A DNA stretch of 64,000 nucleotides from Auanema rhodensis. Its lineage: Eukaryota > Animalia > Nematoda. Positions 8,908-52,984 of the stretch are shown here, one piece after another (the stretch's first letter is position 1; every line of letters begins with the position of its first letter). The position numbers and the translations under genes are program-made. Where the stretch lies: NCBI GenBank assembly GCA_964057225.1, contig OZ059899.1:5456001-5520000 (forward strand). The letters run 5' to 3'. The notes under the pieces were generated by a model. The model worked only from the letters and a program-made list of their open reading frames with translations, had not been told where the DNA came from and ran no database searches.

Positions 8908-11699
8908 ATGCAGGACGGTTTAATGAATTTGTTATTTCCGAATAACCTTACGGACACGGTCCACAGTGAATTTATATCCACAAATGCTACAACTATTCCA
9001 TTTATTGATAGAATATTTTCAAATACCTCATTAGGTCATCGATTATTAGAACGGTAATTATTTTTAAATATTATAATTTCTCTTATAATCATTATTTTTC
9101 TTCAAACCACATTAAACCATAAAAATATTTATGCAGTCAGATTTATTTATTTCAATTCCAGACATACCCAATGTCCTAAAACCATAATATTAATCTAGTT
9201 CCAGACGGTTTTCTTTTTTTTCAGGATGACATTGACGAATCTTCGACATGCATTTTACCTGATTTCTCCATATGAAACTGCTGTACCAACATTAGAACAA
9301 GTTCCAAACTATAATGTTGAAGTATCAGCATGGTGGATCACATTCATTATAATTGAGTTTATTCTCTTAACTATATCTGGACATCATGATCGATTTGCTA
9401 TGAATGACTCCATCACATCTATATGTGCTGGAATGCTCAGTCAATGTTTCAAGTTTGTTTCATTTCATTTCATTCATATTTCGTAATTTAATTTCAAAAG
9501 TTTCAAATCCTAATCAACATAAGTAATTTAAAAAAATTGTTTCTCACTTTGATCATCAGTTCGATTTATGTCCGGCGAATAGAAAACAAAGTGATAATTC
9601 TTAAAGATGTGTTTCAAAGATCAATTGAAAATCATTCACAGAACTAGGAAAAAAATAAAAAAATAAACTAAACTTTGGAAAAACTTCCAAATATATATTA
9701 ATCTTATGTTCAGAAGTAGTGATACTTATTATATCTGATTTTTCAGTTTTATTCTATCTTTGATTTTCAAAATCAACTATTTCTTATAAAAGTACATTCG
9801 ATTCTTCAATTCTGTTTTCTTTCTTTCAGATTCGGTGGTCGAACAGTCGCAATTTTTTTGTATGTTTATGTATGGAATACATTTCGTTTATTAGAATTAC
9901 CCTGGGATTCACCATGGACTTGGATATTATGTTTATTCTTTCAAGATCTAATGTACTATTTTGGACATCGAGCTGTACATGGTAGATTATTTATTATTTA
10001 TTTTATATAATAATGAGACAATGTAATTACACCGACGATGTTTCCAACATTCAGAACTCAAAGCGATTTCCTTGTAAATTTTTTTATTTTTATTTATAGA
10101 AGCTGGTTTCTTTTGGGGATTACATACTATTCATCATAGTTCGGAATATTACAACTTTTCGACGGCGTTAAGACAAGCTGCTATACAAGATGCTGGTCTA
10201 GCAATATATGATGTGATACAGGTAAATAATTTTATTTTAATCAAGTTTTTATATATTAATTTTTTGATATTAAAACAGATGTATACTTTGATTGATTAAT
10301 ATGAAATATTTCAGGCCTTCTTCATTCCGCCACCTATATTCTTAGTTCATCGATATTTTAGTGAAATTTTCCAATTCATAATGCATACGAGTGTTAGAAG
10401 TTTATATAATAAATTTTATTTATTAATTAATTTAGTTGGTTGGAACATTGGGACCATTAGGAATTATTTTTAATACCCCATCACATCATCGAGTACATCA
10501 CGGCCGTAATCCATATTGTATTGACAAAAATTATGGTGGAGTATTTATTATTTGGGATAAGGTAAATAATAATCATTATTATAATTATAATTATATAAGT
10601 GAATTTTTAATTTATTATCTGATTGTTGTCAGATGTTTGGAACATTTGAAGCTGAAAGAGCAGATGATCCTCCTGTATATGGACTAGTAACCAATGAGAA
10701 TAATTTCAATCAATTATATTTACAGGTAAACATTTAAACCAAATCCATCGTTTATAATTAGATTGTTTTCACAGTTTCATGTAATCTGGGATTTACTTAT
10801 TTTCAAAGGACAACAAAAAGATAAAGAAGGAAAACCTATTTTCCCTGGTGTTATGAATAAGGTTGTTTATAGCTAACAAACTTAATTGCATAATTATACC
10901 CATAAATTTTAAGATTAAAGCAGCCTTATATCCACCAGGATGGTTCCCGAATGTTCCGGTAATCCCATTTTTTCATTGGATGAGCATGGTAGATCCGGCA
11001 CATGGAGTTCCTGAAGTAAAACCTTATTTTACCTTTAAAGAAAACTCATAAACATTTTAGCCAGAGAAACCTGTAATTAGATATAATCCACAACTGCAAT
11101 TGTGGAAGAAATTTTATCTAATGAGCCATTTCTGTCTATTTCTGGCCATTTTCTTTCACTTCGAATATGATCGCAACAATCTTGGCTATATAAATTTCAC
11201 TGCAAAAATTGCGTTTTTTGCTTTGACAATGCAATCTTTTGGAGCATTTTTTGACCAAAGGTAAGGAAAACAATTGAACAATGGCTTTTATAACCTATTT
11301 AGATGGTTTGCACCTTATCTAGAAGTATTCCGATGTTTGGGTGTGTTGGGATTCTACGCTTTTCTGGTATTAGACCACATTGGACCAAAACCCCACAGAC
11401 TTTTTATGATAAGTATCCACACTATCTCATTAATAGTTTGGGTAGGTTATATCATAAAAGAGGTGGTTAGTTTAAAATATTATCAGCATGAAAACGTTTA
11501 TTCCAGAAAGTGAGTTCAGCTCAAAAAGCTTCACATGTATCACAAGTGCCAATAAAAACAGTCAGCGTATCTGTAAGTTTCATGATAACACAATTGAATA
11601 AGTACATATTGGGTTTAGATGATCTCTTCAAACTTGCCAGATTTAACTGTTAACTCAATAGCCAACGAAGCGAAAGCAAACCTTAGTTCGAGGATATGA
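8908..11699 (+). CDS. agmo-1: Alkylglycerol monooxygenase (fatty acid hydroxylase superfamily, His boxes)
   Basis: Spliced product ...[34 protein letters not shown]...[10 protein letters not shown]...[19 protein letters not shown]...[30 protein letters not shown] matches recalled AGMO/agmo-1. TTTCAG acceptor at 8887-8892 precedes the ATG. TGA at 11697-11699. Confidence 0.95.
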
Positions 11700-16461: not shown

Positions 16462-18119
16462 TTAATCTTCGTCGTCAGTATCATCGTTATCATCTTCATC
16501 CTCATCCTCATCATCATCATCTCGGTCTTCATCGTCGTCGTCTTCAGTTTCATCATTGTCATCTTCATCAGTTTCACTGTTATCATCGCTATCACTATCA
16601 TCATCTTCTTCATCATCGTCATCGTCATCATCGCTTTCGGGGTTATTCTTTTTCCTCTTTTTGTTAGCCAAGAGATCGTCAAAGAATCTATTGAAGAGCA
16701 ACATGAAAAAGAAAATGAAGTAGAAACTAACCCTTCCTTCACGATTGGTTTTCTTTTTTTGATACTATCAGCTCTAAGGATTGGAACATCTTCAAGTAAT
16801 TTTGATAAAGACCAGAACTGAAAAAAAAATATGTAAAAGGACACAATCGGAAAAATTACTTTTAACGTTGAGGCCATTCCTGAATAAGTCACAACATGAT
16901 CACGATCAGGTGCCACCACAATACCATCAATTCCTTCACCCTGTTCTCCATGAGTTCCGGCAACACCTAACCGCTTTGTAGGTAACACATTCAATAATCT
17001 TTACACCAGTGATATTATAAAATAAAAAACCAAAACCAAAACCTCAATTTACTAGAACTTTCGCTTGCAGTGAGAAGAAGACCTTTTCTTAATTGTACTA
17101 TACTTTCAACGCCCTAAAATAAACAAAATACTTTAAATAAAAATATGTATTCTATACCATACTATATCCGCTTTCAATTCTTTCAAGTATATTACCATAC
17201 TCACCATGGGAAAATACTTCAATATGACCATCCCGACTTCCCACATAAACATATCTACAAAAAGAAAAATTGAAACGGAAGAAAAATAGAACAAACTTGT
17301 CAGTTTTAGCAATTGAGAGCAATTCTGAATGCATTGTTTCACTTTTAACACGCATTTTGCATTTCCTGGAGTCATAAGCAACGAGGGTACCTAATAAAAG
17401 TATAAAGTGAACCGTTGTCATCAGTCAAGTATGTAAAAAACAGAAAAATAATTCAAATAAAAAATACCATCTGAGCATGCAGAGAGAAGACTAAACTTAT
17501 TATCTAATTCCAATGCGTTAATACTCTAAAAGCAGAAAATCAAAAAAAAATATATATAGTATACTCCACCTCTTCTTGCTCTTTCCATGTACAAACAAGT
17601 GGATCATTTATTCGAAAGTCAAACGTTCTAATCTATATAAAAAGATCATTAAATGGACTAAATAAGGTATACCCCACCTCCCCACTTTCATCACCTACGC
17701 AAAACTGATGCCTTCTTGCAGCTAATGAAGGAAAGACAAATAGCTTATTCGGTTTGTCCCTAGTTGCTTTCAACATACAGCGAGTCCTTAGAAAAAAATT
17801 CGATGAATATAACGACGGCAAAAAAAAACCTAACACCAGTTTCTAAGTCAAAACTGCATACTGCTTTGCTTCTTGTGATTGCATATACGCCAGTTCCTAT
17901 ACCATCAAACTGAGCATCTCTGATACTTGATTTCATTTGAAACATCCATGATAGCTATCAAATCGAACACATTTATGAAATGTTTTTTTTAATTACCTCT
18001 ATATCAATATCATCATCATATTTATTTAAAGATAAACTTCCATCTGCTGCTCCAATTAGAATACTTTTATTTGATCCAAGGGAGACTGAACTAATAGGAG
18101 CATCCCATTCGACTTCCAT
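16462..18119 (-). CDS. WD40-repeat protein WDR55-like with acidic C-terminal tail
   Basis: WD repeats (CVGDESGEIRTFDFR, LLSACSDGTLVAYDSRK, KSETMHSELLS, VGSRDGHIEVFSHGEYGNILERI), a C-terminal FFDDL motif and a long D/E tract. Confidence 0.85.
16465..16632 (-). repeat. Low-complexity (GAY/GAR)n Asp/Glu tract in the WDR55-like tail
   Basis: DDDDDDDEEDDDSDSDDNSETDEDDNDETEDDDDEDRDDDDEDEDEDDNDDTDDED. Confidence 0.9.
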
Positions 18120-21300: not shown

Positions 21301-23155
21301 TTAATACCGAATCCTTTGGCTTCCTTCCGCTGAGCAGCAGCATTTTCAAGAGCTTCTTCCAACTGTATTTGTAGATGATGAAAAGCTTCGATACCAAGAC
21401 AAGATGAAACCTGTACAAGAAACTAGTGAACAAAAACCTATATGTGAATACCGAAGAAGTTGATAGCTTAGCAAGTCTAGCATATTCCAGGAAAAATCTC
21501 ATTACTAAAAAATAATGAACATCTGAATTTTTTTGGCCCAATACGCTGCGAGCATTAAACGCCTGGAGATGACAGAAATATACAATATCTTTTAAATATG
21601 CCTACCAATTCCTTCGAATTTTTCATCAAAACATTAAAAGCTTTAGATAATATAAGCTCCACAAATGATTTTAACTGGAGCCTAACTTCAATAGAGGATG
21701 TGTGAGTTTTATCAGAAGATTCAAACGGTCTATAAATGTTTTTCATTAATAAAATAAATAAATCAAACAAAAACATACCTTCTGTTTTTAGCAATACGTT
21801 TCTTGACTTTCCTTTCATCGTTGAATGTTATTTTTGTAATATCTTTAACTACTCTAAATATAATAAATGAATAAAACAATGAATAAAAAAATCTTACTTA
21901 TGAACAACAAAATCATTGTCTCTATTAACTGCCTGTACACCCTTTACCACATATGATCCCGCAAATCTTTGAAAATCAAATAAATAATTAGTTTCTTTAA
22001 AACTTACCTTGTATGTCGGCTTGATAGCACATTTCTCTTTAGTGCTTTGTCTTTATTCATCTCGTTTTCGAAAATCATTTTCATTTCCTCCTCTGCTTTA
22101 CTTTTCTCTTCACGACTCCTTCCTTGAAAAGTTGAAACGATATCAGAAGGAGTCTTAACATAGAACCATATTTTTCATTAAAATATTTTATAAAACATAC
22201 ATGCTCTTTAACGACATATCCAATAATTTGTAAAATTGATAGATGAAAATCACGTTCACTTGAAGTAGATGCTATGTGAGCTAATACCTACGATTTACCA
22301 AACTTTATTTTAAAACATATTATAAATCAATCACCTCCGAGATTTTAGAATCGACAAAAGCTGATATTACTCTATCATGAGTATTGGTTTCCATTTTAGT
22401 TCTCTGCAAGCAATGAATTAGATAACCATTCTGAATCATTGATATACATACTCTATCGTCACCTTTACCACACGGAATTGCGAATATATAGCGGATAAGT
22501 ACAATGATTCTTTCCATAACTAGCTTCTGGTCTTCTGTCCGATCATCCCAATCCTGTTAAATGTTTTTTTTCAATTTCAAATGTTTTTTAACTTACTGTG
22601 TATAAAAAATATTTTTCTAACTTTTTCTTTAAAATAATGAAGAACTCCGGATCGGTAAATGCGGATTTAGTTCGTCTAAACATAAATGATTAAAATTCCA
22701 AATGAACAAGAAAAATAACCTCAAATTTTCTTCCAAAGACCAAAGAATATGATATGATTCTCTATCCTGGGGCGGTTTACCCAGCATACTCATAGCAGCA
22801 GGTTGTACAAGATTGGCTATTAGTCTTAAAATAATAATTTGTTGTATTGAATTCTTCAAAGACGTTATTACAAACCTCAATACAATGTCAAACATTTTTT
22901 CATTATTTTGCTCAGCTTTCATTATATGAATAAGATCATTTTCAACAATGTTTCGTTCTCCGCAAATACGCCGAGCAATCAAATCATCTGTATCATTTCG
23001 TAAAAATCTAATAAGATCTCTGATACTTTCTGAATTAAATTGTTTTACAATTGACTATATATTATATGCAAACCAAAACAATCGGGTTCCTGATAGTAAT
23101 TTCCATCTTCTAAAAAACCTAGAGCTGCTATGGTTCCTTGTATTAGTGTTTCCAT
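18346..23155 (-). CDS. tim-1: Timeless/TIM-1 replication fork protection and cohesion protein
   Basis: METLIQGTIAALGFLEDGNYYQEPDCF-ESIRDLIRFLRND...RRICGERNIVENDLIHI...LIANLVQPA. Also SNRHTRFAGSYVV, ELNKALVKMLHRVSFDLK, LAPEILFWK. More than 20 exons. Confidence 0.95.
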
Positions 23156-26726: not shown

Positions 26727-26906
26727 GTACAACGCTCATAAAGACAATGAATGCTCTTGAATTTCAATCGCAACCTAAGTTGGTTGTTAACCAAAATAAT
26801 ATACATAACATACCTCGTTCATCCTAGTCTTGTTTCAAAAGTTTTGTAAACCTACAATTGATAGAATATTTTACATCTTAAATGATTAACGATTAACTTG
26901 TAATGT

Positions 26907-26978
26907 GACTGCTTGGCGCAATGGTAGCGCGTTCGACTCCAGATCGAAAGGTTGGGCGTTCGATCCGCTCAGTGGTCA
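26907..26978 (+). tRNA. tRNA-Trp (CCA)
   Basis: 72-nt cloverleaf GACTGCTTGGCGCAATGGTAGCGCGTTCGACTCCAGATCGAAAGGTTGGGCGTTCGATCCGCTCAGTGGTCA, anticodon CCA, T-loop GTTCGATCC; matches recalled nematode tRNA-Trp. Confidence 0.97.
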
Positions 26979-26981
26979 AAA

Positions 26982-36433: not shown

Positions 36434-37606
36434 ATGAGTGATGTAGAAGAACTCACTGATATGATAGAGCTACTCCTTCTTCGTCATCGTAAAGAAAAGA
36501 AAGAGTTACGAGGTATTTATTATTGGTTCTTAACTGCTTACTGCTATTCTTAAGAAACCTGTGTTACAATGAAGAAAGCTGCTAAATCCGGCAATAAGCA
36601 GAAACAAAAAGAAACTAATGCTCAAATCGATACTATGGAAAAAGAATTAGAAGCTAGACAAGCTCGAGAACTTAAGGAAGTTGTTATCATTTACAGGAGT
36701 ATTTTCTAATAATCGGCTCTAGGCTCAATCTAGTGTAGACACTAAAGAAGAGATTCTTGCGACGGAACCCGCTGAAGAAAATAGTTTTTACAAAGAACGG
36801 CAAGTAACAGGGAAACAAGCTAAACGTCAAGCTAAAAAAGATCAAAATGCCAAGCGCATTGCAGAAGCTATCCAGGAGGATCGGTCCAATTCTTCCTCTT
36901 CTTTGAGACTTATTGAACTGAAAGCTATTCAAAAGGTTTTTCCTTACTTGACTTGCAATAATTTTGCTCTAATGAAAAACGAAAGGAATTAATTTGTTTT
37001 TGTCAGGTTTTGGAAGAACAATCTCTTCAACTTTTCGACATTGCTCCTGACGGTGATTGCTTGTATAACGCAGTTGCTCACCAGCTCTCAAAGACCATGG
37101 GATTCGAAGCTGTTTGTAGTTTCTATCGTTTTCTTATTTATTCGTTGCTTAGGTTACTGGGAAAGATATGCGGCGTCGTGCTGCAAAGTATTTACTTGAG
37201 CATAAAGATGATTTTGCTCCATTCTTGACGAATGTAATTTTTCTTTACCCATTTTCATAATAAATAAATAAATTTTTAGGATGATGGCGAACCACTAGAT
37301 GAATTTGAGTTTGAAGAATATTGCAATAAAGTATTAAATGTTGCCCAAGACGGAGGTGTTTGGGGCGGTGAACCCGAGTTAAACGCACTTAGCTTATGTT
37401 TGGAAAGAAAGATTGTTGTAAGTTTAAGATTATGAATTTATGAAAATTCGTATAAAATTAATTTTCAGGTAATACAACCAGAAGGTAGATTTGTAACTTT
37501 CGGAGAGCAATTTACTACAAAACCTTTGACTGTTGTTTATCATAGACACGCTTATCAATTAGGAGAACACTATAATTCAACGGAACCTAGAAAATTAACT
37601 GAATAA
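36434..37606 (+). CDS. OTU-domain deubiquitinase, OTUD6B-like
   Basis: N-terminal LLRHRKEKKELR coiled coil; catalytic IAPDGDCLYNAVAHQL, WGGEPELNALS, YHRHAYQLGEHYNS. Confidence 0.93.
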
Positions 37607-39101: not shown

Positions 39102-40399
39102 TCACTTCACTCCAAATTTTAGTTTAATCGGAGCCCTTACACCTCCTTTGTTGAGTATCGTCTGCTGCTCGGTTTTGTTTAAAGCCTCTTTCTCTTTCTG
39201 TAGCTCTTGGCGTTCCCTTTCCAACTGACTTCTTTGAGCTAGCATTGCCAATTTTTCCTCATTCTGAAAACGAATCCATCATATATGATATAAATTTAGG
39301 GCCAACCAAAAGGTAACCTTAATGGCTACTTCCTTTTTTGGATGAACAAGTGATAAAATTCATTTTCATTACCAAACCTGTTTATTTCCGAAAGCTCACC
39401 TCTCGTAGAAAATGGATTTACGTGAGCTGTAGGGTATGCAGAAATCCTCCATGAACAACATTAAGCTGTATGAACAATAGAATTCTTCGCGCTATTTTTC
39501 ATGCTTATACTATTTTTCGAAACAAAAACAAAAAAATATGCGCAGACTTATACAAAAAGCAATATCTTAAATAACTTAATACTGAAAATACATTAACAGG
39601 GTCAGGCCATACATATGTTTTAATTATTATTAGAAATATAAAAAAACTAACATATTTTTTTTCACTTTCTTCGGCGTCCTTGAGTTTTTGCTTCAATTGC
39701 TCTTCTAGAGCTTCACAGCGACGTCGAGAATCTTCCTAAATACAAACGAAGGTATAAACTTTAAAATCTGAATGTACCTCTCTACGTCGCGTTGATTGAA
39801 TTTCTTCAGCCATTTCAGCTTCTATCTGTACGCGTAACCTTTGTTCCACGTCAATGCGAGCTTTAGCAATTCGTTCAGCCATAGCTGCTTCTAATTTATC
39901 AACACGTGAAAGAACCTTAAAATACAAATAAGATATGCAACTAATAAAAACTATGTACCTGTTCGGCAATGCGATCTTCTAACCATTTCTTTGCTGTATC
40001 ACTGAGGGTGGACGAATCGAAATTACCACTTAATTCTTTTTGTACATCTTTAGGAATAGCTACAGCCTCAACTTTTCTAAATAAATAAAAACAAAAAATG
40101 AATAAGTTTAAATGTTTCACTTTTTCTCCTTTTCACGACTTCGGCTTCGATTTCTTTTCCTTTCCTTGAGTAAGCTACCTAGTTTGACACCTTCGGAATC
40201 TGAGACTTCGGATGATTCAGCTCGATATCTAAAATAACTTTTAAAAAATGCTTTAAGATCATTTTTGTACTCACCTTTTCTTTTTCTCTTTCTTATGTTT
40301 CCGTTCCCTACTTCTATCACGATCCCTCTCCCGATCTCTTTCCCTGCTCCTGTCTCGTTCTCTACTGTTTCGAGGTGATCGAGATCTTGATCGACCCAT
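39102..40399 (-). CDS. ARGLU1: Arginine- and glutamate-rich protein 1 (splicing/Mediator regulator)
   Basis: RS-rich N-terminus MGRSRSRSPRNSRERDRSRERDRE, E/R coiled coil, C-terminus EQQTILNKGGVRAPIKLKFGVK* resembling the ARGLU1 tail. Confidence 0.85.
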
Positions 40400-42806: not shown

Positions 42807-44119
42807 TCATTGCTTAACAGTAGTAAGCGCTGTCCTGGCTTGTTCTACAGCTGATATTAAAGTAGATGCTCCAGGATTATTCGTCTTAAACTTAATAATA
42901 TAAATAACAGTATTTTCTCAAATACATACACTCTTATAAATGTTAATTATTTTGTCCATGGCTCCTGTTCCAACTGCAATGCTCTCTTTTTTCTTATCTA
43001 CAGCACCTTTGAAATGATTAACAAGATAATTCGTGCACTAGAAATGATATAAATATTTAAGAAAACAAGTATATACGTACAAGTACAATTCCGTATAAAG
43101 CACGTAAATCTTTGGGATTAAGTTTAATTGTTTGATCGTAGTAAGACTTGGCAAGCTCAATATTATCTTGGCCACCTTGACAATAGCGTAAATCTGCTAA
43201 TCGCCGTAAAAATAGAGTATTCAATGGCTATAAAAGAGATACAACAAAATTATAATTGAGTGAAACTGACCGAAATTAAAACACATTCTTCTAAACAATG
43301 TACTGCCTTAGGAAGATCATTTTCTGTGAGAAAGAGTTCGCTCAATTGAAGCCATGCTTCACTATCGTTCAAAAAAACCTAAGAACGTGATTGAAACATA
43401 GCTATTTAACTATTATATACTTGTAAATAATCATTTAATTCTCGTATTGCCTCCAACCGTTTAGACTGAGCTAAAAAAAGAGCTACTTTTCGTTTACGAA
43501 TACCCTAAACTGTACTTTGAGTAAAAGAAAGAAAAAATATATTTACATTATTAGTAGGATCATTATCAATAAGACCATTGTAAATTTTTAAAGCTGCATC
43601 ATATCTTCAAAAATAAAAGCTTTTTTTTAATAAAAAGAGCCTTGTCTACCTGCCCTGAGCTTCATAAAACATTGCTTTTAATTTTAACACACGGGGACTG
43701 TTAGGGAATCGGCCATTTAGTGTTTTTAAACATTCATCAACAATAGGAATTTCAAAGCGATCAATAGCAGCAAAGCATAGCTAGAATTAAGAAGAAATTA
43801 TAAATTCTGAGAAAAAAAAGGCCAACTTGTTCGTATATGATCCACAATTCATCCCCTAAACCTGATCGATTTTTCTGCAAAACAAGTTCCCAAATATCTA
43901 TTATCTGTAAATTATTAAATTCATAAAGCAAAGGAGAGGAAACTGAACATCTTCGCTATTACGTGCTCCTGAATCCCTCCACTCTTTTAACAATTTCCTA
44001 GCATCTAAAAAACATTTTTCTATGCGAAATAATTAATAAATAATGAAAAATTATATATTTTTCTAAATACCTTCAAAAGATAACTCATTCAAATTGTCTT
44101 TATTATAATCTAGTACCAT
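42807..44119 (-). CDS. emc-2: ER membrane protein complex subunit 2 (TPR)
   Basis: LGDELWIIYEQ, RFPNSPRVLKLKAMFYEA, DPTNNGIRKRKVA, AIRELNDYLQVFLNDSEAWLQLSELF, DLRALYG. Confidence 0.94.
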
Positions 44120-44444
44120 TCTAAAAATAAAAAACTTGTATGGAACAAACGGTAAGTTAAAACTATGAAATATATTGATATTCTGCCCTTACAGTAGCTT
44201 GGCACCATGAATAGGTTATATTAAGTTGGTGCATATTTGGTGCTATGGTGCATGTTACGCTAATACAATAGATTCGGTCTGCAGTTTTATTCCTTCGATT
44301 GAATAATTCATAACAAAACTTGTTAAAAAATCCATGATGATCATACCCATAGCATGCAAATATAAAAACGACAATTGGAAATTAGTATGTTACACACATT
44401 TTAACAGAAATAAATATATTTACAGTACAAATGCAATCTAATTT

Positions 44445-45820
44445 TTATAAACAGATAATGAAATCAATTCTGGATAAAATTGGAGGAATATTATCACCGT
44501 TTCCACCAGAATGTTTCCAATTTTCGGTCAAAATTCTGTTAAAAATAGTAAATTTTAAAAAAGAAGGGCTAATACCTCGAAGATTGTTCCTCACAAAACT
44601 CCCTTGTCTCAGATGTCCTAGATAATGTTAACAAATTCAATCTATCACCAGTCTGAATTTTAAAAAAAAGTTAGATTCTTAATATTGGGGTTACCTGGTT
44701 TGTATCAGGATCACAGAATGCATGTAGAACCAAAGGAGCATCCCATTTCATTTTATCAATACCTAACAAACTGATCACTCCAACACTGGATTTTGATGTT
44801 CCGATTCCTAAAACTCTTTCATTTCGATGTGTTAATTTTAATGTTTTGCTAACGAGTTCGAACTGTTTCATGCAACGATGCTCGTTCAATTTTTTCCGTC
44901 AAAGGAATAGGTTGGAATAATGGACTGTGAAAATTAGTCTATAAAATAGGATATACGTCCCAGAATACACAGAAACAGATTAATAATACCATAACATATT
45001 GATTCAGATCTTTCACCAATTGATCGGCATTGGAGCCGGAAAATAATATTGTTCTAGTTAAAACTTCCGGGGAATTTTTGTTTATCTAAACCAAAAAATG
45101 CATTTTTTAATATTATTGACTAACCTTATTTTTATAAAATTTTTGCATTGTAAACTGTACAATTTGTTTTCCTGAATCAGGTAAAGATTTGTACCTCTCC
45201 AACACTACATTCAGATTTTCTGCCCATAAGATATTAGGCTTCGAATTGGAAGAAAAACTCTGAAAATCAAACAATACTTTAAAATATAAAACTATAACAT
45301 ACAAAGAAAATTGCCAAAATGAGACCGCAAACTATACAGGCTAAAATGTATAGACGATTCTTCAAGACAAAGTCGTTATTCATATTTCTACTAATATTAT
45401 CCATGTAGTCGCACATTTGTTGCCATATGGGTTGAGCAACGAAATCGGTAGCTGGTTTATTAGCATCCAAGAAAACGTCAATTTTTTTCTCCATTAAGCT
45501 CCTTCTGAATATTATCTTTACAATACAAGGATAACTACCATATTCGTGACAAATTGTAAAAATTGAGAAGTAAGAAATAAATTACTACCTGGATTTTGAA
45601 ATTCGTTTCATTCTATCTTGTGCTGCAGAATATTCGTTATACTGTTCGCTAAATCTAAGCCATAATATTAATCCGAGAAACATGCATACTCTGTAAATTC
45701 CTCTTGTTCTTCCCTAGCCTGTTCAACAACGGAGGATTCAGACGATCTATAAATTCTCAAATTGTAATAAAATTTTCCTTTCAACAAAAACCCCTGGAAA
45801 GAATCTATTTCCTGATCCAT
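44445..45820 (-). CDS. Type II membrane protein with a LAP1/LULL1 (TOR1AIP)-like luminal domain; candidate torsin activator
   Basis: Charged N-terminus, one TM (RLYILACIVCGLILAIFF), then luminal ...GIDKMKWDAPLVLHAFCDPD...LTENWKHSGGNGDNIPPILSRIDFIICL*. The gene model is solid; the family call is by motif recognition. Confidence 0.72.
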
Positions 45821-46283
45821 TACACGTCGTAACCGAGCTTTGAGATGCGTAAAAAAGAAACACTTAATAATTTAGAAACCCGCTACAAAAAATGCAAAGC
45901 ACACTATGAATTACGTATTTATTAGAATAATAATATGTATATATGAAGTTGAATATATGGATAAATCTTAGGCAGTTGATTTATCTGTTTTAGAATAAAA
46001 TGATAATAAAATCCGCAACCTATCAAATTACTATATATTATCTAGATACATAACATAATAAAATAAGTAATAAGTATAAGGAGTAATAACACAGAGCATT
46101 TTCGGTCAAACGGCAGTTAATTTTTTTCTCATTTTTAAAGTTCTTTTTTTTCGTGTTTAATATTTAAATTTTATTTTTGTAACTAATTCAATTTTCATAG
46201 TGGGAAATGGGGAAGAGCAAACATAAAGAAGAAAAGGTTTTGAATTCACAAAATATGCAAATTTTATTAATTCGTTTAAGGAA
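45821..46283. promoter_or_regulatory. Compact bidirectional promoter region between two divergent gene clusters
   Basis: About 460-bp AT-rich gap between divergent ATGs at 45820 (-) and 46284 (+). Confidence 0.55.
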
Positions 46284-47282
46284 ATGTCAGTGGATTCCCT
46301 TCCTACTATCTTATATAGTGATAGTGACAGAGCATCTTTATCTTCTAATTCAACTGATGATGACATAGATGAAACTGAGCTTCCAGTAAAGGTATAATGT
46401 TCTATAATTCTTTCTAATTAATGCTTATGTTAAGAAGTTTAATCCTGAAATGGATGATATGGAACCCTCCCCTAAAAAATCTAGGAAAAGTTTTGGAATT
46501 GAGCCTGAGCCAACTAACGTAATTTTGACAATGTTTTGTTGTGTAATCATTTTGTTTATTTTAGGTAGATGATGAATATTCAGGTGTTGACAGCAGTAAT
46601 GCGGAAATTATTTTGATAAGGAAACCGATTGAAGTGAGATCAGATTTTGTTTTGAAAATTTATGATTATTAATAGGTTTCTATCGGGGATTTGAAAAATC
46701 TGAAGTTGATTAAGTTAGCATCTAAGAATAAGAACTTCACTACGGGTATCATTTTTCACATTTATGACTTTTAAAATGTATTTTGCAGGAGATGGAACTT
46801 TTGATGTTTCTCTTACTGATTGCAAAGAAATGGTTCATATTTCTTGTCCAACGTTTACTACTGCTAAAGATGTGTTTAATATCAAGCCTAGTAAGTTCAA
46901 TATGTTATTAATTAACTCCGATATCTTAAATTAGGCGGTACTATTTCACAACATATCAATATTAAAAGAGTCCAAGATATACCAGGTATTTTATTCAATA
47001 TAATTAATATACTATGTTTCTTACAGAAGAAGAGACTAATATTCGTATAAAATCTATTCGTAAAAAACCTTCATTGAAAATGGGACATCTACAACAACGT
47101 CTTAAGGCTTATGGTGAGCAATTTTTTTTAGTGTTTTCTACATCTTTTAATGGACGCTCTAATAATCCTGCAATCCAACTGTGTCGAATTTCGACGAGAC
47201 ATACAAATATTCTTGTTAGTTTTATATTTCTGTATTTAAAATAATTTTAGGAGTCCGTCGTAAAAAAATTGAGAAACAATAA
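46284..47282 (+). CDS. Small protein resembling RNA polymerase I subunit RPA34/POLR1G (CD3EAP, A34.5)
   Basis: Spliced product contains AEIILIRKPIEVSIGDLKNLKL and KPSLKMGHLQQRLKAYGVRRKK*, resembling RPA34 ELWLI-x-AP and LRPRFCAFG motifs. Confidence 0.6.
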
Positions 47283-47486: not shown

Positions 47487-47951
47487 ATGTCCTCGGGCTC
47501 GGAAAGCACGTGTTCTGACTATGGAGGTTCAGATATGGGAGAAGGATTGATGAGTGTTGTTCGTCCAGCGATTCATCAACTTGATGCTCAAGTAGAATCA
47601 ACCAAACTTAGTCAAGTATTATCATACTATAAACTAAATTGAAATCGTATTTGTTTGTTATAGGTATTACTAGCCACGAGAATTCAAGAGTTATCGGAAC
47701 TGCTCCGCGAAATCAGTGAAGATCAACCGTATGATTTGGATGTTTATGCCAGAAAATTAAATGACAGTAGAAGGTATGCTACTGTTGTATAGTAAAAAAA
47801 TGTGTTTTATTTCAGAAGAGTAACAGCTTCTGGAAAACTTCTTGAAAACATTCACGAACGGTTGATTAAACTACAACGTGATGTTGCGCGAAAGTCTCAT
47901 GTAGTTAAGTCAGATATGACATCTCCGCCTCCGCAGCCCCCTACAAGATGA
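47487..47951 (+). CDS. snpn-1: Snapin, BLOC-1/BORC subunit
   Basis: GEGLMSVVRPAIHQLDAQVESTKLSQ-VLLATRIQEL...PYDLDVYARKLNDSRRRV...LENIHERLIKL. Confidence 0.92.
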
Positions 47952-48408: not shown

Positions 48409-51400
48409 ATGAGACTCCTGTTCATCTTAACCCTAGCCTTTTGCTGGGGGAGGTGCGAAGCACAAGAGTTTTCGAGCTCGGTGAGTTTTTCTTATCTCTC
48501 CCGAAATTTGAAAAAAAATGCTGCTTTGTTCTCACATAACATGTAGAAAAAAACAGAAGTTACTACTTGATTAAACTTTAAGATTAATTACATATATAAA
48601 CTCGTGGATTATTTATATCCAAGTTTGAACTGCTTACCCGAAGATAATATATCGGATAAATTTACTTATAAACATATTTTGAAGATTGAATATGAAATGA
48701 ATAATCTTCATCATTATCAGCTTATAAGAACAAGTTTTCCTTCAAAGTAGACCGTTTACTTGTTTTCATAGCTTTTTATTTGGGTCATTTAGATAAATTA
48801 GAATTTTTGATAACAAAAAGATTATTTTTCTAAAATTATTTGAAAACAATAATTTTTTTATTTCAGGATCATCCATATATTCAATTTCATGAACGCCCTC
48901 TCCCAATTCCCCCTTTCCATGGAGGAGACGGTCCACAGGTTAGAAATTAGTTTAAAAATCAAATTGAAACAAAGTTATAATTGGAATGTTTTTCTAAGTA
49001 ATCTTAGATTCTCCACGCTGTTCAAGGATATGATGCAGATCCACATTGCCGAACACCAAGGAACGCAGCTACAGTGTTCATTGAATTCTCAGAAAATATT
49101 CTAGAAGATTACTCAGATGGTGCTCGAATGCCCGTGAAAGGTTTGTATGAAGTTTTCGGTTTAATCGATAAAGTTTTTGACATTTAATATAGCTATTGGA
49201 GATCCTTTTGATTTAGTTGACCAATTCATTAGATAGAGGTCAATCAGTGAGCCTTTTGAGTTTTTAGAAGTTTTTGTCTTTTAGATGATTATCGCTACAG
49301 TATTATCATACATTAGTTTAAAATTTTCAATCTTTTCAAGTTTCATAATATTTATTAGTTTCTATATATAAGTATATACACATATACATGTATATGTATA
49401 TCAGTATTTTAAAAATCAGAAAACCAAGATAAAATATAATATATAAATAAATAGTTTTGTTATCAAACTTTATATCTTTTTAGATTTTATATTTTCGGTT
49501 TTGAATTAAATTTTTAGAAAAAAGAGACAAAAAAAAAACAAAGTGAATTGAAGTAAAAAAAAAATATTTTTTTTAGCCTCATGTGCTCCTTGTAAGACGG
49601 GATCCAGATTTTCATATGCTCCACTTCCAAGGGGACAAGATCTTGATGAACTTGTTGTTGGTGATATTAAAGATATAGTTATTGGAGGTATAATTTCAAA
49701 AGAAATGATTTATTTTATGGAAGATTAATATAATAATTATTTTATTATAATTATTTATAATAATACTTTTTCAGGGTTTAGATGTGCAAATAATTCCCAC
49801 CTATGTGTCGAGGCAACAGATGGAACATATTACAAGGCCAATTCTGATAATGTTGTAATTTGGCCTATACCATATTTAAAAAGTTTAAATCTGCTAAATT
49901 CAACATTTTAAATAATAATTACAGATAAAAAGCCTGTAATGCTGGGTATTCTAGATCCAACTGAATCTCTTAGAGAACTGATTGGAACTAAAATAGAGAG
50001 TGGATCTAATCAATTAATGGTTACATTTGAAAAATAACAATTTAATAGAAGCTTATAACTAATTTTAGAGCACAAATCCAATGAAATACAAGAAAGGATA
50101 TGAACATAAATATATCGAATTGGAAGGAATTTCATGTAATTCATGCAATGGTGCCATGAAACAGTGTCCCCTATTGGCTGGACCTCCAAGAACACAACTC
50201 AGACTTAATGATTGGAGAGTTCCGTGGGTACATTGTGTGAAATATTTGTTATAAACAATATGCTTATAGTGGAACTGATATTAAACCTCCAGGTGAAGCA
50301 CCAGTAGCTCACATAGAACAACCAAATATTGAAAAAGCTGGATATAAGTATAGTTTTTAAAAATGTTAAAATAATTTAAAGCTTTTATAATTCAAGTTAT
50401 AATGGACCAGAAACTTATTCATCTGATACATATAGTAAAGAACAAAAATCTGCAACAGAAGAGCCATATTCTAACTTAGGTTTGAACTTATTTTTTTATA
50501 AATTTATTAATATATGTATAGGATATGAAGAAAATGGAGTTTATGTACAACCCGATGGAATGAATCCTTATCTTGATCCAAATTTTGATTTAAATGATAA
50601 ATCAACATCAAATTCCGGAAATGTTAAGGCTAAAGGTTAAAGTTACAGATAAATGTTTAAGTAAACAATTTATTATTTTAGATTCACAAATTCGTTTAAC
50701 CTATCCAACAACAACAACGACCACAACAACAACACCAACTGTAAAACCAGTTGTTCAGAGATTCACTGATAATAGAAGAATCATTGAGGTTAAGAAGTAT
50801 CAAAAACTTAATTTTATATAAGATATTATAGACTATAAATTCTCGTATTTCTTCGCAATCTCGTGGCCAAGATATTAGACGGTTTTCTAATCTTTTTGTA
50901 AACACAATTATTATTTTATTTATAGTGCTCCTGTACCAGTTCATATGAAAAATGATTTTCTACAAAAATCGCTCTTCACTTCTCGTCTAACTCCAAAAAT
51001 TCATCAGATGCTGACGACTCAAGCTCAACTTGAGGTCACTGTTATGCCTCTCAATCCTCCCCCTGTTGTAACCCCACAACACCAAGTTCAATTACAGAGA
51101 AATGTTGTTAATAATATTGTTGAACCTGTTGTACAGAGTACAACAGTTAGAGTGCCTGTGCCAGAGGAAAGGGTGCCTAAAATGCCTGAAAATTCTCAAC
51201 CGCCAACATTTGTATCTATGAACCAATCTCCACAACCCGAAAATCTTCCAGTTCGTGTTGCTGTTCAAAATCCCTCTATTACCATTCCTATAGAGACTTC
51301 TGTACCATTAATGTCTCACGGTTCTCTTCAGAATATCCCACCACAGTTCTCTTCCCAAGTCACTTCGCAAAATGTCCCAGAAATGACTCCTCCCAATATT

Positions 51401-52984
51401 GCCCTCCAGAATCATGTATCTCTAAATGTTCCCCAGACTTCCTCTCCTGAAATTCCTTCGTCACAAAGTGATATTATAAATCTCACACCTCCAGCTGTTC
51501 ATGAACAGTTTCCTCCTATGGTTTCCCATCAAAATATATCGCCTGAAGCTCGTTTACCGAATCTCAATCTTCACACTTTTGCATCACAACTTCCTCAAGA
51601 TACACAACCTCAATCAATTCCTCAAAATATTCCATTCCACTTCATTCAGCAAAATACTCCCATCCAGCCAGTTTCTGAGATGATTCCTGTGCAGTTTATC
51701 TTCCGAAATCCTACAAATTCAGCACCTATGATGATTACTCAGAATATTCCTACTAATGAGCTTGTTCAGCTGCTTGCTGCTGAGTTCATGTCTCAAAATC
51801 CATCTATGAATGCTCAGCAATCTCCAACCTTCCCAGAGCAACAAACATTTGCACGAACACAGTTTCCTCCTAGCGTATTCCCCGTGCAAAATAATCAAAA
51901 TATTCCTACATCAAAACCTGCAGCAATGTCATTGCAACAAAATTCAACTGTACCAACTGAAGCTCAACAAGTTCTTAAAACAAATAATGTGCCTACCTTT
52001 GATTCTACTACAACAACATTCGAGCCCCAGGCAGTAACCGTGCAACCTCCTCAACCAATAGTTTCTCAAATTCCTATTCAAAATCATAATCCCGTGGAAA
52101 ATAGTTTCAGTATTGATGCTGAACCAAAACAAGACTTTGTTAAGCATCTTAATGATGTTATACCTTCCATACCCCGACCAATACAATCTCCTCCCCAATT
52201 TGTCCAACGGCCGGTACAACCTGCTCAACCATTTATTTCATCTATCCAATCTTCTCAACATATTTCAACAACAACATCTCCTTCCGTCAATATTCGAATT
52301 CCTGCTCACCGTTCTCAATCTTTGTTTGATTCCAATTCAGAACCCTTCCAACGAAGGCTTCTTCAACCTGCTCCGGAAACTATTAACTCAATCTGGGGAC
52401 AAGAAGCACTTAGATTCCCTGAATTAATTTCACCTGTTGAACAATCCTTATTGTTAAACTCGATTATTTCACCAGCAACTGGAGAAACTGTACCAGTGTT
52501 TCAACGTAACCCATTTCAACATCTACCTTTCGCTAATTCTGCCCCGGCATCACCTCCAGGAACATCAAAGTTCTTCCAAACAGAACTTCGTCCAGAACAC
52601 CCCTTCGAAGCTCAAATTGAAACAACAACATCACATCCTGATTTTTTGATCACCGAATCTAGTCAAAGTACAACTGAGACAATAAGTACAACAACCGAAG
52701 CAATAACTACAGTTGCTGAAGTAGGATCTGAAGCTGATATCAGCACGTTAAGTCCATTACCTCTGATTGGAGGTCCTGTTCCACCGCCAAAGGAAACAGC
52801 TTTTGATGGAAAGTTCACACAAGAATCACCCAGTATTGTTAGTTGTAACCATAATAACTATTTTTTCAATTTTGATATATTTCAGAAAGATGGACCACCT
52901 AGTCAAGTTCCAACATGGCAGTGGTTAATGGAACACCCAGCTCGTATGCGAGCTTTACTTCGTAGACGAAAGATGCGCGTCTGA
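48409..52984 (+). CDS. Secreted protein: signal peptide, Cys-rich N-terminal domain, long Pro/Gln/Thr/Ser mucin-like region
   Basis: Signal peptide MRLLFILTLAFCWGRCEA; exons with HCRTP, SCAPCK, GFRC..LCV, ISCNSC..QCP; poly-Thr; ORF 50945..52984; 48-nt in-frame intron at 52838-52885. Confidence 0.82.

Follow-up and report, generated by a model that had tools for sequence, protein, structure and literature searches.

To our knowledge, the ER lumen contains no AAA+ ATPases apart from the torsins. These enzymes depend on LAP1 or LULL1 for the arginine finger, and defects in torsin or in LAP1/LULL1 lead to dystonia and nuclear-envelope disease. A gene on the minus strand at 45820-44445 of the window, the whole 64-kb stretch of DNA analysed here, raises the question of whether it encodes such a cofactor, as an earlier note on this DNA had proposed. 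Since divergent LAP1/LULL1 homologues occur in C. elegans, a gene of this kind is to be expected in a nematode-like genome. We consider it fairly likely, on the basis of its predicted product, that the gene codes for a diverged torsin cofactor of the LAP1/LULL1 family which would supply Arg324 as the arginine finger.

A nine-exon gene encodes a protein of 331 residues

Joining of nine exons between 45820 and 44445 on the minus strand gave a clean frame of 331 aa, which runs uninterrupted for 996 nt (331 codons and a TAA stop codon). The gene had earlier been spliced by hand, and that model holds; all the peptide strings quoted for it, namely APLVLHAFCDPDTNQ, NLLTL, EEQSSRILTENW, and DNIPPILSRIDFIICL followed by the stop, were found in the product. 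The eight introns, all GT..AG, measure 35-84 nt and have T-rich acceptors, and the exons range in size from 21 to 67 codons. No second copy of the gene was detected in the window on tblastn of the model.

All the exons lie on the minus strand. Exon 1 (45690-45820) opens the N-terminal part, which would be cytoplasmic or nucleoplasmic, with an ATG at 45820-45818, the first ATG past an in-frame stop 17 codons upstream. An acidic and then a basic stretch of this part are encoded by exon 2 (45589-45654), and its remainder, together with the single membrane helix, by exon 3 (45303-45504). The luminal domain begins in exon 4 (45125-45259). Exon 5 (44990-45085) encodes TILFSG, a hydrophobic strand, and after it the amphipathic helix DQLVKDLNQYV; exon 6 (44854-44938) adds a further part of the luminal domain, and exon 7 (44695-44807) encodes two hydrophobic strands, VGVISLLGI and APLVLHAF, the latter leading into Cys270-Asp271. 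The strand RLNLLTL and Cys296 are found in exon 8 (44576-44652), with an N-Q-T sequon at the exon 7/8 junction, and exon 9 (44445-44535) closes the frame with the stop codon at 44447-44445.

On the other side of the start codon, a divergent gene was observed at 46207-46600 (plus strand), with an ATG at 46207 (MGKSKHKEEK...), a second exon rich in Ser and Asp, and no Pfam family. Both genes would share the intervening 386 nt as a promoter region, which leaves little room for more 5' coding exons of the candidate.

It could be argued that there is no real gene here, or that it has been mis-spliced, so that no such 331-aa product is made. The gene model comes from genomic sequence, and the in-frame GT..AG alternatives are combinatorially numerous. 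When all in-frame GT..AG pairs were enumerated, alternative acceptors were found for intron 1 (45654/45648), intron 2 (45504/45501/45498) and intron 6 (44813/44807); the junction alternatives amount to shifts of two to six codons, and affect no landmark residue. Such an error is nevertheless very improbable, as eight consecutive short introns with good donors and T-rich acceptors would have to restore one frame over 996 nt by accident. The exons are also richer in G+C than the introns by 9.5 percentage points (0.345 vs 0.250), and the opposite strand of the gene carries short ORFs only, with no competing ORF.

The product has the layout of a type II membrane protein

In the predicted product, an N-terminal part of 116 aa precedes a single membrane helix, and a C-terminal domain of 198 aa follows it. 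The helix (residues 117-133, LYILACIVCGLILAIFF, encoded at 45303-45353 on the minus strand) is the sole strongly hydrophobic stretch of the protein, with a Kyte-Doolittle maximum of 2.73 over 19 residues from residue 117. The residues K-N-R stand just before it, and hence point to a type II orientation. The topology suggested in the earlier note is thus borne out by one helix, by K/R on its N-terminal side and by the 198 residues that follow it; the luminal part had been put there at roughly 190 aa, and is indeed present, at the slightly larger size computed here.

In the C-terminal domain there are only three cysteines (270, 296 and 330) and one N-x-T sequon (275). A regular-expression search of the product, which serves as a test of absence only, found neither Walker A (G....GK[ST]) nor hhhhD[DE]. 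The topology and this absence of Walker motifs are, like the gene model, direct observations. A Chou-Fasman-type profile of the luminal domain, crude and with no discriminating power, showed hydrophobic strands alternating with helices.

In human LAP1 and LULL1, which have the type II orientation, the activation domain is luminal and about 230 residues long, and structural papers on LAP1 describe a domain that lacks Walker motifs and retains a Walker-B remnant, hhhhHR. The candidate is like human LAP1 (TOR1AIP1) in being a single-pass type II protein whose C-terminal luminal domain is without Walker A and B. It is unlike it in that its luminal domain falls short of the human one by about 25-30 residues and its N-terminal part has 116 aa, against roughly 340 residues in LAP1B. 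The shorter non-luminal part gives it a layout closer to that of human LULL1 (TOR1AIP2) than to that of LAP1, although it departs from LULL1 in the same respects as it does from LAP1. Since LAP1 and LULL1 are indistinguishable by primary sequence (Sosa et al.), the candidate can be assigned to neither paralogue.

Counterparts of three hallmark residues are collinear with human LAP1

In human LAP1, Sosa et al. call Cys496 'the most conserved cysteine' and describe Arg563 as the 'strictly conserved' arginine finger. According to the structural papers on LAP1, Cys424 in helix alpha1 is disulfide-bonded to Cys582 beside the C-terminus; the LULL1 equivalents are the C310-C468 disulfide near the C-terminus and the R449 finger. 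We took the human LAP1B sequence from PMC4252041 and compared it with the candidate by short landmark windows only. These were windows of 11 residues around the residues singled out, except for Cys582, for which the last seven residues were used and anchored at the C-terminus. The windows were then fitted to the 198-aa domain without gaps and in the human order, each spacing being allowed to differ from that in human LAP1 by up to 20 residues, and the best such placement was kept.

The chain of Cys496, Arg563 and Cys582 placed on Cys270, Arg324 and Cys330 of the candidate, so that collinear counterparts of three hallmark residues are directly observed. The best-matching landmark is the window of Cys270 (LVLHAFCD in the candidate, LIFYKYCD in human; score 20), in which the Cys ends a hydrophobic strand, and Cys270-Asp271 (codons at 44710-44715, minus strand) is the counterpart of human Cys496-Asp. 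Arg324 (codon at 44469-44471, minus strand), the proposed arginine finger, lies in ILSRIDFII, opposite human LWSRISHLV, and the comparison of ILSRIDF with LWSRISH contributes to a window score of 13. The earlier note had placed the Cys-Asp at 44715-44710 and the Ser-Arg-Ile arginine at 44471-44469, which is exact, and it was right that the motifs follow each other in the human order, Cys270 preceding Arg324. Cys330 (codon at 44451-44453, minus strand) is the last-but-one residue, as is Cys582 in human LAP1. The anchored 7-mers, IDFIICL and LKRGICL, gave a score of 11 (P=0.003 in shuffles), a match which arises because both proteins end in I-C-L. This identity of the last three residues with the human LAP1 C-terminus (PMC4252041) was absent from the earlier note. 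The candidate has in common with human LAP1 a strand ending in Cys-Asp, a Ser-Arg-Ile arginine with hydrophobic flanks, here the putative finger, and a terminal I-C-L.

A further residue was brought opposite its human position by ungapped alignment anchored on the conserved Cys, in which Asp256 falls opposite human Glu482. The E482A change in human LAP1 is listed as a folding mutation, and the correspondence may count as a small extra point for the LAP1/LULL1 reading.

A second S-R-I triplet is present in the domain. Its arginine, Arg302, is encoded across the exon 8/9 junction (AG|A; 44532-44577, minus strand). Scored by hand, the window of Arg302, in which polar residues flank the arginine, comes to about -4, and that of Arg324 to 13, so that Arg324 is the better candidate for the finger and Arg302 a less likely one. 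The second triplet still leaves some doubt as to which arginine would be the equivalent of Arg563.

The match is unlikely to have arisen by chance

The three-landmark chain scored 44; shuffles averaged 2.9 (sd 8.3), and 8 in 100,000 of them reached the observed value; the shuffle statistics, here and below, are partly circular because the hypothesis arose from two of the three landmarks. With five landmarks and no minimum separation the score was 62 (shuffle mean 17.3, sd 9.6), and none of 3000 shuffles reached it. When the windows were kept at least 11 residues apart it was 54 (mean 15.6, sd 9.6), a value attained in 3 of 10,000. The two motifs of the earlier note taken alone scored 33 (mean 16.7, sd 5.3), and were equalled by 78 of 10,000 shuffles (P=0.008).

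The main alternative is that the gene encodes a lineage-specific type II membrane protein of the ER or Golgi which is unrelated to LAP1/LULL1, and that its motif matches are accidental. On this view the matches to Cys-Asp, Ser-Arg-Ile and Ile-Cys-Leu would have come about by chance in a proteome rich in I, L, F, N and K, and the placement of the alpha1 and Walker-B-remnant windows, which is not robust, speaks for it. As a control on junk sequence, the three-landmark test was run along the stop-free six-frame translation of the whole window, where 7 of 119,662 positions reached the candidate's score, one of them with all three key residues as well. This puts the false-positive rate at about 1e-5 to 6e-5 per position in this AT-rich window. 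Junk frames can thus do as well as the candidate at about 6e-5 of positions, but what has to be explained is a match at a true C-terminus; over the about 15 real C-termini in the window the chance expectation is roughly 1e-3, even before a type II layout is required. For an unrelated protein, a true C-terminus, the topology, the domain size, the lack of Walker motifs and three collinear residues must all coincide. We judge that a chance match to the landmarks, with topology and domain size also demanded, is unlikely from these sequence counts, and that an unrelated membrane protein is accordingly a minority possibility, though one to be taken seriously.

Departures from the known activators

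Several features of the candidate do not fit the family. One is the alpha1 cysteine, which is absent: the best placement of this window sets DQLVKDLNQYV against human EEALRCLSEQI, and has Asp204 at the position of Cys424. As no Cys is available in the alpha1 region, the conserved disulfide of the family (C424-C582 in LAP1) is impossible in its usual form, and Cys330 would either stay unpaired or bond with Cys296 or Cys270. The structural papers describe the disulfide of the alpha1 Cys as highly conserved in LAP1/LULL1, and do not call it defining. Another is the distance from Arg324 to the C-terminal Cys, which is 6 residues compared with 19 in human LAP1, a loss of about 13 residues from the tail. 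The distance from Cys270 to Arg324 departs from the human one as well, at 54 residues in place of 67.

These departures bear on another possibility, in which the gene does descend from a LAP1/LULL1 ancestor and no longer activates torsin. The protein would then be a degenerate paralogue, acting as a scaffold or an inhibitor or having no torsin-related role. The loss of the alpha1 Cys and the shortened tail after the arginine would agree with this, as would the N-terminal part, which is short, with no recognisable domain and no evident lamin- or chromatin-binding region. Against such decay, the features which the structural papers tie to activation have been kept, namely the arginine with the hydrophobic residues around it and the cysteine that is most conserved in the family, and we regard a non-activating descendant as improbable.

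The proposal of the earlier note, that this is a protein of LAP1/LULL1 type, is thus supported in part, by the three collinear hallmark residues and the lack of Walker motifs, and needs to be qualified by the missing alpha1 Cys and the shorter tail. Membership of the LAP1/LULL1 family is in our opinion plausible, not proven.

Searches for relatives

Database searches were run exon by exon, with pieces of 25-67 aa. None of eight exon pieces matched a Pfam family at E<=10, and phmmer of exon 3 and all six luminal exons against the PDB, at E<=10, retrieved no LAP1/LULL1 chain; what was retrieved were chance matches to TFAM, ribosomal protein S25 and tau. Exon 3, the longest (67 aa), which covers N-terminal part and helix, had 0 matches in a whole-library phmmer search. 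The non-luminal part of the LAP1/LULL1 family is not conserved. Word-based homologue searches with stretches of exon 7 and exon 4 were blank among candidates of 0.55-1.75 times the query length, and metagenome scans with exon 3 and the exon-7 stretch found no relatives.

That no relative emerged from phmmer, word-based, metagenome, exon-wise Pfam or PDB searches is what an unrelated, lineage-specific protein would lead one to expect. The blank results say little, however, because the queries were short pieces and the word-based candidates were confined to the stated range of lengths. They do set a bound on the resemblance. A 55-aa exon of the neighbouring EMC2 gene was matched easily, and any similarity between the candidate and human LAP1 must therefore be far weaker, lying beneath detection by exon-wise phmmer. 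For a LAP1/LULL1 homologue, a similarity as weak as this fits the literature term 'divergent', as used for the C. elegans proteins.

Nematode homologues have already been reported

The earlier note knew of no well-established LAP1/LULL1 orthologue in nematodes and raised the prospect of novelty, which fails on the literature. In C. elegans, GEI-18 and T09B4.2 have been published as divergent LAP1/LULL1 homologues among the proteins associated with the torsin OOC-5, with which they co-purify (PMC7733798), and the preprint version of that paper lists deletion alleles of both genes. C. elegans is also among the species in the torsin/LAP1 alignments of Sosa et al. As mentions of GEI-18 and T09B4.2 together with torsin are limited, in the literature searched, to PMC7733798 and its preprint, the two proteins are known but barely characterised. 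Judging by their published description, the candidate would, if it is from a nematode, most likely be orthologous to one of the two. It is probably an ordinary diverged, and unusually compact, member of the family already reported in C. elegans.

An EMC2 gene lies directly downstream

The next gene downstream on the same strand is EMC2 (42900-44119, minus strand, the lower bound being approximate), which has about nine short exons. Its exon at 43060-43224 (55 aa) matches human EMC2 residues 179-226, in the TPR region, with E=1.7e-9, and EMC2 chains were the top matches; the emc-2 neighbour named in the earlier note is thereby confirmed. A prokaryotic genome scan with this exon found no relatives. 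The EMC2 ATG at 44119 comes directly after a T-rich, acceptor-like ttttatttttag, and is separated from the stop codon of the candidate by 326 nt. Between the two stands an AATAAA hexamer (44286-44291, minus strand), a possible poly(A) signal of the candidate gene, 154 nt past its stop, which leaves about 166 nt to the ATG of EMC2. Such an arrangement would be compatible with a nematode-type operon and with the co-transcription proposed in the earlier note. In C. elegans, neither the GEI-18 gene nor the T09B4.2 gene is known to neighbour emc-2.

A bolder version of the cofactor reading can be built on this arrangement. The protein would be a stripped-down torsin activator, with its arginine 6 residues from the C-terminal Cys, its alpha1 Cys gone and its disulfide lost or else formed anew between Cys330 and Cys296 or Cys270, and an operon with EMC2 would couple torsin activation to the insertion of membrane proteins into the ER. 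We think this extended proposal unlikely.

Other features of the window

No P-loop motif was found in any frame of the 64-kb window, and hence there is no torsin gene in it. On the plus strand, 5 kb from the candidate gene, a 679-aa open frame (50945-52984) rich in P, Q, S and T was observed, which has no Pfam family, no homologue in a word-based search among candidates of 0.55-1.75 times the query length and no identical entry in the assembly collection. An exon at 47487-47639 (plus strand) showed a weak match to Snapin/Pallidin (E=0.001, below the Pfam cut-off), and may belong to a gene for a BLOC-1 subunit. A further exon, at 22632-22982 (minus strand), matches the TIMELESS family with E=1.4e-5. 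Weak to moderate Pfam matches were obtained for fatty acid hydroxylase (10436-10684, plus strand), WDR55 (17155-17421, minus strand), OTU protease (37010-37225, plus strand) and ARGLU1 (39739-39969, minus strand), all of them pan-eukaryotic families. The only Rfam match in the window is a tRNA-Trp (CCA) gene at 26906-26979 (plus strand).

Proposed mode of action and significance

If the candidate is a diverged LAP1/LULL1-type cofactor, as we favour, its product would be inserted in type II orientation in the membrane of the ER or the nuclear envelope, with the 116-aa N-terminus facing the cytoplasm or nucleoplasm and the 198-aa C-terminal domain facing the lumen. By analogy with human LAP1 and LULL1, the luminal domain would adopt an AAA+-like fold unable to bind nucleotide. 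It might then dock on an ATP-bound torsin of the OOC-5 type, and in doing so would push Arg324 into the torsin active site, which would trigger ATP hydrolysis.

The gene would not stand for a new kind of system, since OOC-5-associated nematode homologues have already been published (PMC7733798); if the assignment holds, it is a compact addition to a known family. A very small and diverged activator of this kind would, if real, reveal which parts of the cofactor are indispensable, namely the arginine, the conserved Cys and the terminal Cys, and the disulfide partner in alpha1 and the C-terminal tail would appear to be dispensable. The candidate could also aid the annotation of the fast-evolving LAP1/LULL1 family in nematode-like genomes.
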